64,000 nt of DNA from Paraphysomonas bandaiensis (Eukaryota > Protista > Chrysophyceae). The DNA lies in the NCBI GenBank assembly GCA_965644295.1, contig CBFFRP010000379.1, positions 99,585 to 163,584 of the forward strand, in the 5' to 3' direction. A program made the translations under genes and the position numbers. A model generated the notes under the pieces. That model had not been told where the DNA came from. It made no database searches and was given only the letters and a program-made list of their open reading frames with translations. The number at the start of each line of letters is the position of its first letter. Position 1 is the stretch's first letter. Shown one piece after another: positions 1,919 to 17,184 of this stretch.

Positions 1919-3408
1919 TATTAGGATTCAGCTTAATACATGATTGTATCTGTGAGTTATAATGTTCAATGAAATATACCATGAACTGAATTAGAGAGAG
2001 TATCTGTCGAAGATACGTGATCGTCATCATAACGTCGTCATTATCAGTTACACTTCTAACTATTCCGTTGTGCATGATAGCTACGTTCTATATTGTTATT
2101 CATAATTTTCACTCTATCGTGTTCATTACTTACACTATAATAATCACAACATTGTTTTACTATTATAAAGATCAATTCTTTATTATGGCTAAATAGACAA
2201 TATCGATAATTATATATCTATACATAGTGTGGTACCACCTTAATTATACTAATTAGTTACAAAAAGAGTATGTTGAGTTCTGCTATTTTAGAGCAATTGA
2301 AAGCTGTAGTTCAAAGATATTTGACATACGGCTGTTAATGGAAGAATACAGAACTAATGTCATAATAGCAATCATAGTAGTGAAAGTTATAAGATCTTGA
2401 TATCTGATATTGTATGGAAATGATTGGTAGTTGAGACAACATGAATTTGGCGATTGCTAAGTGTATTGCTCATAAGTTTATTATATGTTACTTTATGTTT
2501 CTAACTTACAATTTTATCTCATATACGATCAATATGTCAATATATACATATTCGTTAGATCTTGAACAGAAAAACTTCCAGTTATGATCCGTGTTAGGTA
2601 GAGGAGTTGAAATACCACCAGATAATATCCAGAAGACATATATAGGCAACAATGACAAAATTGGATGGTATTATCAGACATCGAGGAACTAGATACAAGC
2701 GAGCTACTACTAATTAAACAAAAGGGGGGGTATCTGCTCTCTATATCTCCATATGAAAGAGCTGAAAGCCGTTCGTAGATTAATTCAGCTACTTCCTATA
2801 AGCTTCTAGTAATAATGCTGCTTTACTTAATATATTTTTTTATATCTACTTCTCAAGTATGTACATAAGTATACAAGTATGAGATACATGCATATCAGGT
2901 GGAAGATATGATGACTTTAATACAAACAATACATCAGAAACAAGCCATAGATTTAATTAAACTTCCTGGAGCGAGATGATTCCCATCTATGTATGTATGT
3001 ATATGATGCACATGGAGCTCATCAGATCAGTTGGAGAGTATGAAGCATTATACAGTGTAGTTATAGGAGCATTCAGAGCATGAGATGGTAGACGTACATG
3101 TATGTACTGCTGTATAGGTATGAGCTCCTCTCTACTCTCTCTCTATATATATGTACACGTATATAGTGTATACATATATATGTATATACGTGTGTGTACG
3201 TTTACTAGTAACGGCCTCCTGTCAGTGTAAGTGCTACATAACCAGTCACTTATATTAAAGAATTGATATCTAGCTGCGATAATGATGCAATGTAATAGCT
3301 GGATGAACACTGTGTTGTCTCCTATCTACTGTACAGGTGAGTGATACTGTCTATGGACCATGCTAACATAATGATAGCTGCGAGCCAAGATACGCATATA
3401 TGTACAGG

Positions 3409-4982: not shown

Positions 4983-5252
4983 CAAAGTACAATACACAGG
5001 CTTCAACAAAACGATCAATACTTCTACAAGTTCCTGGTTTCCAATTTCCAAAGAACGAACGCACATGTCCTCGTAATATAATAATGACGCATAACTCACA
5101 TCGCATATACAATTATTAGTAATTAGTATCAGTCAGGATGTCATCAAGAAAAGAAAATACTATTTAACTCACATTGTCAAATACAAGTTACATATATGTG
5201 AAGCTTCAATATAGAAAATATATGTCGAATTGCCAAGTTACAAGAAATAATT

Positions 5253-7997
5253 TTAGATTCTAGTCTGGACTTTACTTCCTGATACAGCTTCACGCCGTTC
5301 AGAAGACTTCCTAGAAGACTTTCGGGATGCAGCCGTTTTGGACGCAGTAGGTTTCCCTCGTGATATGTACTGCGTGTTGGCAGTGTCACACTCATAACAC
5401 ACACTAAGAAGACATATTAACCCATCCACATATTCCTTATATAATGGCCCGCCGGGCGATTTTGATTGCATAGATTCATTGTCAGTCCCTTGTGAACAGA
5501 GTACAGCAACACTCTCCACTCCTTCAACACATTCTTCTAGCATCTGTAAGATATCATCCCTGTACAAGCGATTGTTTTCCTCCACACCGAGCCATAGTGT
5601 GCCAACAAGCACTCGTTGCAGGTACGTAGTGATGGAGATTAGGGTTCGCATCAGGAGTTCCTGCGGGGCAATCGGGTGTGTGTGAGAATACAGAAAGAGG
5701 CATATCTCATCATACGACGTATCCATCTTATTGTGCGCAAGCAACAGAAACTCAACCAGAGCATTTATAGTCGGCCAAGATACATCTTCATAGAAGCGGC
5801 ATTCAGGTCCCGCGTTTTCTATCCTAAGTGCCTGCATATGCGCGTATAAACTCACGAGAGCACAATATCCATCGACATTCCAGTCACTCGCACGAGGAAG
5901 GAAGACCACACCCTTAGTGCTCTGAATGGCAGGTAAAATACCAGTGTGAAGTGAACGCAACCCATCAAGCGACAATTGCATATTCTCATCACCACGTACA
6001 CAATCACTAATACGTTTCATTTGAAGCGATTGCAAACTTAATAGCGACGCAATCACCCCATACAATGCAGCCATCACTGTACGCATCCCACTCGACATGT
6101 CCAAGGGTAACAAGGATTTCAACGATTCCATAAAACTCAACGCCATGTTTAGGGTGTTCGAGAGTACTGTACACCTATCAAATGTACTGGTGCTATCATG
6201 AGCCTCCACTGAGCAATGACGACAAAACGAACCTTCTACACTACTATCGGAGGAACTAGAAACCTCATTATGCCGAATACACAGCATGGCAACAATACAA
6301 AACACACGCATGGGGGCTATTAGTTCCACTACACACGACTCGACGCTATGATTATCATTATTCAGACCGGAAAGTTGAAAGTTCAGTCCACTAGCTAGGG
6401 AATGGATGGGACATACAGAAAGTGAGGTGTCGTTGAAAATATCGGCTGAACTTTCTGTTAATCTACACCTTCCGCAACAGATACAAGTATCATCATCGAG
6501 AACTTTGTTGAATGAAATCATACCCACTATAGCGGTGGGTTCCAAGTGGCAGCACAGAACCAACGTGTCACATGCAGCCTCAACATGCTTCACATCAGCT
6601 ACAGCTGTGTTTCCGCTGTCCGCATCAGAACGGTGGGAGCAAACATGGATCAGTTCTCTAAGCAGACGATGACTCTGTTGCGAAAAAATCTCACCCCATT
6701 CAGCTTGAGATACAGCTGGAACAGGTTTCTCAAGGATATCAACAAGTGTGGTTCTTAAGGTTTCAATATCAGATATTGAGTGAAGATATTGTAGCCCATT
6801 AAAGACTGTCGGCATCGTTCGATCTGACGCTGCCAGCGTAGTCGGAATCCGTCCCTCAGACGTCCGTGGGCGCGTAGAACTCTCAGGATAGGAGTGGCGG
6901 CCCTTGCGCGGTTTCGAAACAATATTTGTGTTGTTTTTACCGCCTTTCTGGCTTACTCTAGACAACAATTTGTCCGGATACGATAGCCTTAAAGTTGATA
7001 TTGCGCCAGTAAATTGTGAGACCAAGTCTTCTGAGGACTCATCCACGCACTCATCCTGACTGTACTTCATGACAATATTTTCCCTCACAGGCTTACATTC
7101 ACTTTCAGGGAAACTCCCGGTACGTAGATCTTTTTGAGTTTGTAATGGCACCTTCTCTTTCTTATTGACAGAAGAACCCTGAGTTGTTGCGATCAAATAC
7201 ATCGAGATAATATGTCCAGATGCATCTTCTACAACTGTTAAAACACCTGGTGAAGGGTCAGGAACAGACCATGTTGCTGGTCCGAGATTTTCGCCTTCAA
7301 CCCTGCAAAAATAGGGGACAGCAGATGCTGGATTGGTATCGAACACAGGAATCTCTTCTGGCCACCAGTATACATCGTCCGGTACTGAATGGTTCCGTCG
7401 ATCCGATTGATTGTGGGCAGTGGTCGGGCGGCGAGCGTAGCATATAAGCCATCGATCAACAGTTGGTGAGATATTCTTTGAGTTGTTAGGGTATGTAAAA
7501 GGGAATGGTACAAGTCCTCTATCCACTAGCGATTGAGACAACACAGTTTTACGACTACTGGCATGAAAAAAGGCTGGAACTATAGTGTTATCTTGTTCAT
7601 TCGAGTTGATACGCTGTGATGTCCATATATTGTTTCCACTCTCTAGTATATGATAACAAGGTACCCAAAGAGGGTTCATAGTATCCAAATCACTATCTAA
7701 TAATTGTGTATGTGGCATTAACTTTGTATCATATGTGGATTTATTCCATGACTTTCTTCTTCTTTGTGTAGTTTGTTTACTTTTTTTCTCATTCTCAGAT
7801 ATTTTTTCTTTATTTCTATTAATACAAAAATTAATTCCATTTGGTCGTATTGTCCATTCCGTTAATTGAGATGATTCCGAGATAGTTTCATCTAATTGAC
7901 GTCGTCTTGAATCGCCGATAGGATATGATACACGTTTTGTATTCGCAATTTGTATGGGATTACCTCTATCCCACTGTTTTCTATGTTTTTTAGGCAT
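5253..7997 (-). CDS. Hypothetical protein (~914 aa; helical C-terminal half), divergent from cullin
   Basis: Long uninterrupted ORF; no family recognised; the 3' end may be spliced. Confidence 0.75.
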   Translation of the reverse strand: MPKKHRKQWDRGNPIQIANTKRVSYPIGDSRRRQLDETISESSQLTEWTIRPNGINFCINRNKEKISENEKKSKQTTQRRRKSWNKSTYDTKLMPHTQLLDSDLDTMNPLWVPCYHILESGNNIWTSQRINSNEQDNTIVPAFFHASSRKTVLSQSLVDRGLVPFPFTYPNNSKNISPTVDRWLICYARRPTTAHNQSDRRNHSVPDDVYWWPEEIPVFDTNPASAVPYFCRVEGENLGPATWSVPDPSPGVLTVVEDASGHIISMYLIATTQGSSVNKKEKVPLQTQKDLRTGSFPESECKPVRENIVMKYSQDECVDESSEDLVSQFTGAISTLRLSYPDKLLSRVSQKGGKNNTNIVSKPRKGRHSYPESSTRPRTSEGRIPTTLAASDRTMPTVFNGLQYLHSISDIETLRTTLVDILEKPVPAVSQAEWGEIFSQQSHRLLRELIHVCSHRSDADSGNTAVADVKHVEAACDTLVLCCHLEPTAIVGMISFNKVLDDDTCICCGRCRLTESSADIFNDTSLSVCPIHSLASGLNFQLSGLNNDNHSVESCVVELIAPMRVFCIVAMLCIRHNEVSSSSDSSVEGSFCRHCSVEAHDSTSTFDRCTVLSNTLNMALSFMESLKSLLPLDMSSGMRTVMAALYGVIASLLSLQSLQMKRISDCVRGDENMQLSLDGLRSLHTGILPAIQSTKGVVFLPRASDWNVDGYCALVSLYAHMQALRIENAGPECRFYEDVSWPTINALVEFLLLAHNKMDTSYDEICLFLYSHTHPIAPQELLMRTLISITTYLQRVLVGTLWLGVEENNRLYRDDILQMLEECVEGVESVAVLCSQGTDNESMQSKSPGGPLYKEYVDGLICLLSVCYECDTANTQYISRGKPTASKTAASRKSSRKSSERREAVSGSKVQTRI

Positions 7998-14270: not shown

Positions 14271-17184
14271 ATGATTAATATTGCCGGTACAACACCTGTA
14301 GATGATCCCTCATATAGGTATAAGATGCCACGGATCATACCTAAAGTAGAAGGTAGAGGGAATGGTATTAAGACCGTGTTAGTTAATGTATCTGATATTG
14401 CAACTGCGCTGAATCGGGATGCATCAGAAATTACAAAGTTTTTTGGATGTGAATTAGGTGCACAAACGACAATGAGTGTGGATGATGACAGATATATAGT
14501 CAATGGTGCTCACAGTACGGGTGATCTTCAGAACTTTATGCATCGTTATATAGAGTCTTTTGTCCTGTGCAAAAACTGTCGTTTGCCTGAGACTCATTAC
14601 AAGATCAAGAATGGGATCATCTGTCAAAAGTGTATGGCTTGTGGCTCTAAGGACCCCTGTGATATGACTCATAAGCTTACCACGTTTATTCTAAAGCAAC
14701 ACAAAAAGGCAAAAGAGTCAAAAGACAAGGAGTCAAAGAAAGACAAGAAGAAGAGCAAAAAGTCGAAGTCAAAGGATGAAGGGGAAGCGAAGGAGGAAGA
14801 AGAAGAAGACAGCAAACCAGCTGCATCCAAGGTGAAGAAAGAGAAGAAAGTGAAGAAGAAATCGAAGTCGAAAGAGGAAGTTGCAGAGGAAGAAGATGAG
14901 GACGTTGAGATGGATACAGAGAGCGAGGCCACAGGTACACATTGATTCATGACAGAAATTTACATGTATAGTTGTATGGTATAGTAGTGAGGAATGGTAA
15001 TGGTGAGAGTTTCTGTTTGTTCTGGGAAATTGAACCCTCCTAGAAGCACAGTCACTTATGGACCACAACCTGAACAGATATCTGAACTATACCGTACTGT
15101 TGTTATGTGATATATATGTAGTTGTATGGTATAGTAGTGAGGAATGGTAATGGTGAGAGTTTCTGTTTGTTCTGGGAAATTGAACCCTCCTGGAAGCACA
15201 GTCACCTATGGACCACAACCTGAACAGATATCTGAACTATACCGTACTGTTGTTATGTGATATATATGTAGTTACATGGTATAGTAGTGAGGAATGGTAA
15301 TGGTGAGAGTTTCTGTTTGTTCTGGGAAATTGAACCCTCCTAGAAGCACAGTCACTTATGGACCACAACCTGAACAGATATCTGAACTATACCGTACTGT
15401 TGTTATGTGATATATATGTGGTTGTATGGTATAGTAGTGAGGAATGGTAATGGTGAGAGTTTCTGTTTGTTCTGGGAAATTGAACCCTCCTGGAAGCACA
15501 GTCACTTATGGACCACAACCTGAACAGATATCTGAACTATACTGTACTGTTGTTATGTGATATATATGTAGTTGTATGGTATAGTAGTGAGGAATGGTAA
15601 TGGTGAGAGTTTCTGTTTGTTCTGGGAAATTGAACCCTCCTAGAAGCACAGTCACTTATGGACCACAACCTGAACAGATATCTGAACTATACCGTACTGT
15701 TGTTATGTGATATATATGTAGTTGTATGGTATAGTAGTGAGGAATGGTAATGGTGAGAGTTTCTGTTTGTTCTGGGAAATTGAACCCTCCTAGAAGCACA
15801 GTCACTTATGGACCACAACCTGAACAGATATCTGAACTATACCGTACTGTTGTTATGTGATATATATGTAGTTGTATGGTATAGTAGTGAGGAATGGTAA
15901 TGGTGAGAGTTTCTGTTTGTTCTGGGAAATTGAACCCTCCTAGAAGCACAGTCACTTATGGACCACAACCTGAACAGATATCTGAACTATACCGTACTGT
16001 TGTTATGTGATATATATGTAGTTGTATGGTATAGTAGTGAGGAATGGTAATGGTGAGAGTTTCTGTTTGTTCTGGGAAATTGAACCCTCCTAGAAGCACA
16101 GTCACTTATGGACCACAACCTGAACAGATATCTGAACTATACCGTACTGTTGTTATGTGATATATATGTAGTTGTATGGTATAGTAGTGAGGAATGGTAA
16201 TGGTGAGAGTTTCTGTTTGTTCTGGGAAATTGAACCCTCCTAGAAGCACAGTCACTTATGGACCACAACCTGAACAGATATCTGAACTATACCGTACTGT
16301 TGTTATGTGATATATATGTAGTTGTATGGTATAGTAGTGAGGAATGGTAATGGTGAGAGTTTCTGTTTGTTCTGGGAAATTGAACCCTCCTGGAAGCACA
16401 GTCACTTATGGACCACAACCTGAACAGATATCTGAACTATACTGTACTGTTGTTATGTGATATAGTTTATATGCGTTCAAGATTTGTTGAATGTCTATTT
16501 TTCTAATCTATACTTACTGTTTTAGATGCTGCGATTGAGCAATTCAAGCTCTGGCTGAATAATAATATATCCCCATCTCCGGCTACTGGTGTTCTTCTGC
16601 CGAAGCAGCAACATCTTGCAGCTGTCGTTGAGGAACTGCGGTCGATTCAGACGCTGTCGTCGTTGCGTCCTTCTGATAGGGCTATAATTTACATCGGTGC
16701 AACATTTTCCCCTACGTCCATAGCAGACAATGATGTTAAGAAGCACAAGGATGTGCTTGGTATGCTTGCACCCAAGGATAATGAGATTCAGCAACGTCAT
16801 CTTATTGCGGTATGTCTTAAATAAGCATTCTTGCACTCACGCTGTTGTATATGCTACGCCAATTCAATCGTATCTTTTGTAATTTATCTTGAGCAGGCTG
16901 CGGAATGGTTCTGCGGTACTCGCTATCCCGATTTGCTTCGTATGTTTCCTGTGCTGTTGAAGCAATTGTATGATGAAGATTTGGTAGAAGAAGAGGCTTT
17001 CTACGCCTGGCATACGGATCTTACCCGTAATGAGTTTACTGCCGAGCAGAGCATGATAACTCTGGAAACGTTGGAGCAACTCAAAGAAGCTGCCCAACTC
17101 TTTGTTGTCTGGCTGCAAGAGGCAGATGAAGAAGGGGATAGTGAGGACGAGTCGGGGGAAGATGATGACGAGGAAGATGCCTGA
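14271..17184 (+). CDS. EIF5: Eukaryotic translation initiation factor 5; exons 14271-14934, 16526-16809, 16897-17184
   Basis: DDPSYRYKMP, EGRGNGIKT, ITKFFGCELGAQ, CKNC/CMAC zinc finger; C-terminal W2 domain LKQLYDEDLVEEE and WLQEADEE; reading frame kept across GT-AG junctions. Confidence 0.95.
14966..16464 (+). repeat. Tandem array of 10 near-identical 150-bp units in eIF5 intron 1
   Basis: GTTGTATGGTATAGTAGTGAGG recurs at 14971, 15121 ... 16321 with a few single-base variants. Confidence 0.98.
14974..15097 (+). ncRNA. Putative box C/D sno/scaRNA (copy 1 of 10; the others at +150-bp steps, last D box at 16432-16435), predicted guide for U2 snRNA Cm40
   Basis: 12-bp terminal stem GTATGGTATAGT/ACTATACCGTAC; C box GTGAGGA (14987-93); D box CTGA (15082-85); K-turn spacing; GAACAGATAT directly upstream of D is complementary to conserved U2 GUAUCUGUUC; sense strand of an intron in a translation-factor gene. 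Confidence 0.7.

Follow-up and report, generated by a model that had tools for sequence, protein, structure and literature searches.

Within a 64,000-nucleotide stretch of the genome of Paraphysomonas bandaiensis (contig CBFFRP010000379.1, positions 99,585 to 163,584; hereafter the window), the first intron of the gene for translation factor eIF5 contains a satellite-like tandem repeat. The locus raises the question of whether this repeat is ordinary intronic DNA or an array of genes for a box C/D small nucleolar RNA (snoRNA) and, in the latter case, which target such an RNA would recognise. An earlier note on this DNA had proposed ten box C/D guides directed at C40 of the U2 small nuclear RNA (snRNA). 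Our analysis indicates that the array probably consists of ten tandem copies of one intron-encoded box C/D snoRNA gene. Judged by sequence comparison, it is the organism's only member of a deeply conserved, unnamed family of eIF5-intron box C/D RNAs outside Rfam. The assignment of U2 as its target is held more tentatively.

The repeating unit and its family

The array was delimited with Tandem Repeats Finder (period 150, 10.0 copies, 98% matches, score 2929), and its units were found head to tail on the sense strand of the first eIF5 intron. The composition of the array and of one unit (unit 5) is as follows.

14969-16464, forward strand: tandem array of ten 150-bp units; ten matches in the genome, all at this place
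14974-16447, forward strand: ten predicted box C/D RNAs, each ~124 nt long including both stem arms; unit n runs from 14974+150(n-1) to 15097+150(n-1)
15574-15585, forward strand: unit 5, terminal stem, 5' arm GTATGGTATAGT
15587-15593, forward strand: unit 5, C box GUGAGGA, aligned with model positions 1-7 (family consensus RUGAUGA)
15613-15651, forward strand: unit 5, central domain with helix CUG/CAG, internal loop UUUG/GCA, 8-bp hairpin TTCTGGGA/TCCTAGAA and loop AAUUGAACCC
15656-15662, forward strand: unit 5, degenerate C'-like box UUAUGGA, placed by alignment (family consensus CGAUGAU)
15672-15681, forward strand: unit 5, candidate antisense element GAACAGAUAU, complementary to U2 GUAUCUGUUC
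15682-15685, forward strand: unit 5, D box CUGA, a family-invariant column
15686-15697, forward strand: unit 5, terminal stem, 3' arm ACTATACCGTAC
15698-15723, forward strand: spacer between the RNAs of units 5 and 6, 26 nt, A/U- and G/U-rich

The terminal stem comprises 12 bp (11 Watson-Crick pairs and one G-U pair), with one unpaired A between its 5' arm and the C box. The kink-turn spacing was confirmed: a 3-nt bulge (A, G, U) is followed by the GA of GUGAGGA facing the GA of CUGA (tandem G-A/A-G). The D box reads CUGA in all ten units. The C box agrees with RUGAUGA at six of seven positions; the UGA of the sheared pairs is kept, and the G at position 5 would give a G-U in place of a U-U opposite box D. 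In its minimum-free-energy fold, a single unit adopts the terminal-stem form, at an energy ordinary for its composition (z = -1.4). The number and length of the units, the stem, both boxes, the internal hairpin and the sense orientation all agree with the earlier description.

Homologs were obtained by searching the eIF5 exon-1 protein against protein representatives, after which the encoding contigs were examined. In at least eight other lineages the orthologous intron of eIF5 was found to contain one or two copies of a homologous RNA. Among genomic relatives the closest is L024 (82% tblastn identity over the N-terminal part), which carries a single RNA (L024:6754-6897) with a terminal stem, a canonical AUGAUGA box, a CUGA box and a central segment that hardly differs from the one in the window unit. 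Two copies ~440 bp apart share the same intron in a more distant relative (L025/L026/L027; at 5194-5373 and 5627-5809 in L026), and the GC-rich locus L028 carries one (3116-3259). The introns of relatives, which the earlier note had wished to see checked, therefore do contain a single-copy homolog (L024, L028), but the antisense element is absent there. With a pattern of the RNA core alone, 15 further loci (L035-L049) were retrieved from metagenome contigs, eight of them with eIF5 exons on either side of the RNA. Homologs in eIF5 introns were thus placed at L024, L025-L028, L036-L040, L043, L046 and L047, and the two-copy tandem form in two other lineages (L025-L027 and L047). Two extra matches to the core pattern in the Paraphysomonas genome, located in coding-like DNA, were rejected as chance.

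Among the 17 homologs, the C box has the form xUGAUGA in 15 (the exceptions being GUGAUGC in L039 and AUGAUGU in L041), the D box reads CUGA in every case and most members show a clear C' box (CGAUGAU). Their terminal stems occupy the same place and are of unrelated sequence, that of the window units being the strongest in the family. Columns of the central domain are invariant in both family alignments (A1 and A2). The invariant core UUUG-UUCNNNGA-loop(..GAACCC)-UCNNNGAA-GCA, with pairing NNN, is present in 10/10 window units, in which an A/G polymorphism stays paired as U-G. The hairpin covaries: across 17 distinct cores, each of its three middle pairs occurs in four to five standard pair types, and only two A-A mismatches were seen.

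A covariance model (R1) was built from the 17 homologs with the window excluded. It matched 10/10 units from box C to box D (model positions 1-113; 14987-15085, 15137-15235 and so on to 16337-16435) with 52.8-54.5 bits, corresponding to E values of ~1e-9 in the window and ~1e-6 genome-wide. No match beyond the ten units was obtained in the 62.5-Mb genome. Because a model derived from other organisms' homologs aligns every unit, in addition to the motifs, the interpretation of the units as box C/D RNA genes on the sense strand of the eIF5 intron is strongly supported, and the identity claimed earlier from the motifs is borne out on grounds free of the window. Since R1 matches all units and nothing else in the genome, the array would be the only representative of the family in this organism.

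In Rfam 15, no family reached its gathering threshold in the window, and nothing relevant was found on the unit at E values up to 10; no family matched the homologs at E values up to 10 or 1. The Rfam comparison suggested earlier for the unit thus returned no family. A literature search yielded neither an earlier account of a box C/D family hosted by eIF5 nor one of comparable arrays in marine protists, which is weak evidence of novelty. At one homologous locus a second snoRNA may be present: ~620 bp downstream from the family member there is a weak snoZ101-like box C/D match (L045:3897-3975; 27 bits, E 0.77).

Host gene, copy number and RNA contigs

The host gene is organised as follows.

14271-14934, forward strand: eIF5 exon 1, N-terminal eIF-5/eIF-2B domain and Lys/Glu-rich linker (open reading frame; splice joint in RNA contigs)
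14935-16525, forward strand: eIF5 intron 1, host of the array, GT..AG, boundaries CAG/GTACAC and TTTTAG/ATGC
16526-16809, forward strand: eIF5 exon 2 (joints in RNA contigs; spliced product)
16810-16896, forward strand: eIF5 intron 2, 87 nt, GT..AG, without an RNA gene (joint 16808^16896)
16897-17184, forward strand: eIF5 exon 3, W2 domain, acidic tail and stop codon

The strand and the intron status of the array follow from splice joints in the contigs of three RNA runs (X10, X12 and X17), which link 14934 to 16526 and 16809 to 16897 and include the GT..AG joint of intron 1 (14932^16524, cut +2). The spliced product comprises 411 aa and has eIF5 relatives; Pfam PF01873 is recorded for homologs of its N-terminal part. 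As in the rest of the family, the RNA-bearing intron lies between the N-terminal domain with its linker and the W2 domain. The terminal stem of the last unit stops 78 nt 5' of the 3' splice site (window 16436-16525), which is near the distance reported to be optimal for splicing-coupled box C/D assembly in vertebrates. The D box is 90 nt from the 3' splice site, compared with 110-160 nt in relatives.

In a unit-by-unit comparison, six of the ten copies proved identical to the consensus. The variants listed in the earlier note were all reproduced: A>G at unit position 74 (copies 2, 4 and 10) converts a hairpin U-A to U-G, C>T at position 125 (copies 4 and 10) converts a G-C pair of the terminal stem to G-U, and GT>AC at positions 6-7 (copy 3) abolishes two outer stem pairs. 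Two more were detected, T>C at position 88 (copy 2) and A>G at position 2 (copy 4). The array sequence occupies a single locus in the genome. In an independent run that covers the intron flanks (X5; the kind of run is not on record), the depth of the unit contig was 1096-1273, compared with 84-97 for the flanks, which gives ~11-13 copies. Since this excess was observed in another sample, the amplification is no assembly artefact.

The unit was seen as its own contig in three RNA libraries. In two RNA runs this contig measured 180 nt, the length expected for a circular 150-bp repeat at k = 31.

Complementarity to U2 and to ribosomal RNA

The U2 snRNA of the organism is encoded by four identical genes reading ...GUGUAGUAUCUGUUCUUAUCAG and hence bears the target sequence that the earlier note had assumed. 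The element GAACAGAUAU pairs with U2 GUAUCUGUUC over 10 bp, including one G-U pair beside box D (-11.3 kcal/mol), and D+5 falls on the C of UAUCUG. This residue is C40 in human numbering and position 40 or 41 in this U2, according to its true 5' end. Among the organism's own 18S, 5.8S, partial 28S, U2, U4 and U5 RNAs, the U2 match was the best box-anchored target, the runner-up being a 9-bp match to 5.8S. When the guides were shuffled, 10 anchored bp were obtained anywhere in the 3.85 kb of targets in 5.7% of trials. Multiplied by the share of target positions known to be methylated, this gives an estimated chance of ~1e-3 to 1e-2 for a match that includes a known methylated site. The Cm40-Psi41 pair of U2 is conserved from fission yeast to higher eukaryotes, and the only known guide for Cm40 is scaRNA:MeU2-C41 of Drosophila (PMC5733568).

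Based on this complementarity, the unit may target U2 C40 for 2'-O-methylation, a proposal that we place only just short of an even chance. Next to box D, CAGATATCTG is palindromic and two direct copies of CTGAAC flank AGATAT, a pattern suggestive of a small local rearrangement or duplication. Taken as a whole, the scenario would be that an ancient rRNA-associated eIF5-intron snoRNA gained a new antisense element by a small rearrangement beside box D, came to methylate U2 C40 and was then amplified tenfold; we consider this full sequence of events possible, at somewhat less than even chance. As regards the class of Cajal-body guides for Pol II snRNAs (scaRNAs), the unit offers a predicted snRNA pairing. 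Localisation of scaRNAs to the Cajal body involves a CAB box or, in box C/D scaRNAs, G/U-rich repeats; the segment after box C (AUGGUAAUGGUGAGAGUUUCUGUUUGUU) is G/U-rich and may serve as a lead. A (CATA)n microsatellite lies directly downstream of a U2 gene (L001:1700-1740) and resembles CATA runs in the spacer of a U14-like array described below.

The ribosomal DNA (rDNA) of the organism was located via 5.8S. The 18S and 5.8S sequences are complete (L031). The 28S sequence is present only as fragments at contig ends, covering approximately model positions 1-326, 675-1383 and part of 2391-3399. The assembly is broken in the rDNA (G000 contigs C68, C188, C420, C438, C653, C516 and C525), and C525 is a rearranged piece in which 28S sequence abuts 18S. 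The loop of the central hairpin was found to be complementary to 18S positions 363-373 (AGGGUUCGAUU), with 11 bp in the window (-13.8 kcal/mol), and pairing of the loop with 363-373/375 recurs with 8-13 bp across 10 lineages. No D' box adjoins this pairing, which is therefore no canonical methylation guide; the family RNA may instead touch pre-18S rRNA during ribosome assembly. In addition, the end ..UCUGCUGU/CUGA of many members forms 5-11 bp with a 28S segment, AGACAGCAGGACGG (site ACAGCAGG; L032:9731-10000, minus strand, position 99 of the piece). The box D guide may originally have been directed at this segment, and the end in question has been lost in the window and in L024. As a target shared by the family it was rejected: only ...GCUGU/CUGA recurs beside box D, and 5-11 bp to 28S are too short and too variable. 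In every unit, UCACUUAUGGA (window 15656-15666 for unit 5) is also complementary to 18S 1767-1777 (UCCGUAGGUGA) near the 18S 3' end, with 11 bp including two G-U pairs; this match is not kept in the homologs and is probably due to chance.

Several observations have to be set against the view that the array encodes functional U2 guides. The U2 antisense element occurs in 0/17 homologs, L024 included, and a box-anchored guide for U2 C40 was sought in all relatives examined and found in none. Adjacent to box D, the family evolves fast, and the window element is related neither to ..CAUUUGACGU/CUGA of L024 nor to the common ..UGCUGU/CUGA. About 2 kb of 28S are absent from the assembly, and a better rRNA target could lie there. 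Position 5 of the C box is G in the window, against U in every homolog, and the window's C' box is degenerate. With 98-100% identity among the copies, their agreement is uninformative on selection since the amplification. The arms of the terminal stem are also able to pair across the 26-nt spacer. In the RNA runs, finally, the depth of the unit was 0.3-0.8 of exon depth and the unique intron flanks were unassembled; this depth fits a stable RNA, and it equally fits ten copies in 3-8% of unspliced transcript. The earlier claim of a U2 C40 guide is thus upheld as regards the 10-bp complementarity to the organism's own U2 and the position of D+5 on the C of UAUCUG, but the element finds no counterpart in the family.

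The foremost alternative accepts the same box C/D array and regards its complementarity to U2 as fortuitous. The RNA would then act through its central domain only, for instance through the pairing of its loop with 18S in ribosome assembly, and the sequence beside box D would be a drifting spacer. The pattern of conservation speaks for this: the sequence upstream of box D varies between almost all lineages (many members end in ...UGCUGU/CUGA, the window in ...CAGAUAU/CUGA), whereas the central domain is invariant and its pairing with 18S is kept. Unanchored 9-10-bp snRNA matches are common among family members, and the palindrome and the CTGAAC repeats could reflect local duplication rather than a selected guide. 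Yet the match abuts box D exactly, with D+5 on a site that is methylated from fission yeast to animals (PMC5733568), and its joint chance was estimated to be low, as given above; nor does the loop pairing, which has no D' box next to it, amount to a canonical guide either. We judge a fortuitous match to be a live possibility at a little less than even chance.

It is considerably less likely, although not negligibly so, that the unit is a decaying snoRNA pseudogene that spread as an ordinary intronic satellite and forms no functional ribonucleoprotein (RNP). The window version is indeed the most deviant member of the family: its C box (GUGAGGA) and C' box (UUAUGGA) depart from the consensus, the usual sequence beside box D has been lost, the segment that follows box C bears no relation to the CACGUAUGUAUUCG-like sequence seen in several relatives, and the copies are too alike for a test of selection. 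Nevertheless, the units retain every position that is invariant in the other 17, namely the UGA of box C, the whole central domain, the UG of C' and CUGA. Their 12-bp terminal stem is the strongest in the family, and the recurrent variants stay paired as G-U. They are the sole family members in the genome, and the family has been kept across very divergent eIF5 genes; bona fide snoRNA arrays such as that of U14, moreover, are normal here.

A functional hairpin across the spacer, formed by the 3' arm of one unit and the 5' arm of the next and giving a miRNA-like cluster or a cluster of RNase III substrates, is highly improbable. The two-unit minimum-energy fold does choose it, and the sole Rfam match on the unit, to mir-4680, falls there. 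That match is insignificant, however (22 bits, E 0.93; the gathering score is 78), and the stem has 12 bp only. The single-copy homologs have C/D-flanking terminal stems of unrelated sequence with which no spacer hairpin is possible, and in the course of transcription each 3' arm encounters its own 5' arm while the next unit has yet to be made.

Proposed processing, precedents and implications

For the ten-copy box C/D array, the following route is proposed. Each eIF5 pre-mRNA carries ten units, each of which would close via its 12-bp terminal stem, the within-unit stem being the ancestral one because the single-copy homologs have it. Closure would join GUGAGGA and CUGA as a kink-turn, on which Snu13, Nop58, Nop56 and fibrillarin could assemble. 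Exonucleases entering from the ends would free the outermost units only, and cuts in the spacers would therefore be needed; the 26-nt spacer is presumed to be the site of this endonucleolytic separation of the inner units, which would then be trimmed to their protein-protected stems. Pairing of the stem arms across the spacer could be a processing signal. The outcome would be ~10 RNAs of ~124 nt per splicing event, a dosage device of a kind used for other snoRNAs too. Each RNA would combine two elements: the ancestral invariant central hairpin, whose loop would pair with 18S at AGGGUUCGAUU, and the species-specific 10-nt stretch beside box D, which might, with nearly even probability, place a 2'-O-methyl group on U2 C40.

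Tandem amplification of snoRNAs is a habit of this genome. At G000:C434:87990-102345 (partly in L015), 58 U14-like matches (RF00016; 36-50 bits) form one array with a period of 255 bp, the unit of which has a canonical UGAUGA box and the classic ..CCUUGGAUGUCUGA guide for 18S. As in the eIF5 intron, a box C/D snoRNA is repeated head to tail; the U14-like array differs in its longer period, its long spacer and its short terminal stem. As two-copy forms are found in two other lineages, tandem duplication inside the intron is recurrent and further advanced here. The eIF5-intron homologs of other eukaryotes share with the window the host intron, the order of the boxes, the invariant central hairpin domain and the D box; they differ in their mostly canonical C boxes, their clear C' box, other sequences beside box D and one or two copies instead of ten.

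Outside this family, tandemly repeated snoRNA genes occur in Euglena, and mammals have the SNORD115/116 arrays. The arrays of protists are polycistrons outside introns, and in SNORD115/116 a repeated host unit supplies one snoRNA from each intron, whereas in eIF5 all copies lie within one intron. The intronic clusters of rice and Drosophila consist mostly of different snoRNAs or a few isoforms, in contrast to the eIF5 array, in which ten near-identical copies follow one another at a strict 150-bp period within a protein-coding gene for a translation factor. Tandemly repeated snoRNA genes are also reported from trypanosomatids (PMC2780460), and these, like the Euglena and SNORD115/116 arrays, likewise exhibit amplification of guide-RNA copies in tandem and their concerted evolution. 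The presence of several snoRNAs in one intron in rice and Drosophila is mentioned in the same source (PMC2780460, citing Liang 2002 and Huang 2005); more than one snoRNA per host intron likewise implies endonucleolytic separation. The organisation termed unusual in the earlier note is therefore unusual relative to animals and yeast, but plant and insect precedents exist (PMC2780460), as do the 58 U14 copies in this genome and the two-copy forms in L025-L027 and L047.

The closest functional counterpart, scaRNA:MeU2-C41 of Drosophila, is a box C/D guide for U2 Cm41, which equals vertebrate Cm40; no orthologs of it were found in other species (PMC5733568). No sequence relationship between it and the unit is evident (no Rfam family matches the unit at E values up to 10). 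The Drosophila RNA has been validated experimentally, by an assay in S. cerevisiae among others (PMC5733568); the U2 of this yeast is unmethylated at C41. For the unit the link to U2 is one of complementarity, and in its family U2 is not a target of the other members.

Satellite-like intronic DNA can thus be a dosage-amplified guide-RNA gene, and since this genome amplifies snoRNAs repeatedly, its repeat annotation and its snoRNA catalogue need joint revision. As ten RNAs in one intron would require endonucleolytic separation, the locus offers a natural substrate for finding the nuclease in this lineage. With a guide for U2 Cm40 known only in Drosophila (PMC5733568), the unit is a concrete candidate; should the assignment hold, this conserved U2 modification would gain its second known guide, and a snoRNA would have switched its target from ribosome to spliceosome. 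Of the further results, the most interesting is the conserved eIF5-intron family, a box C/D family outside Rfam whose central domain is structured and invariant and whose link to the eIF5 intron has been kept across very divergent eIF5 genes. Together these features recommend the family as a good candidate for a non-canonical part in the assembly of ribosomes.

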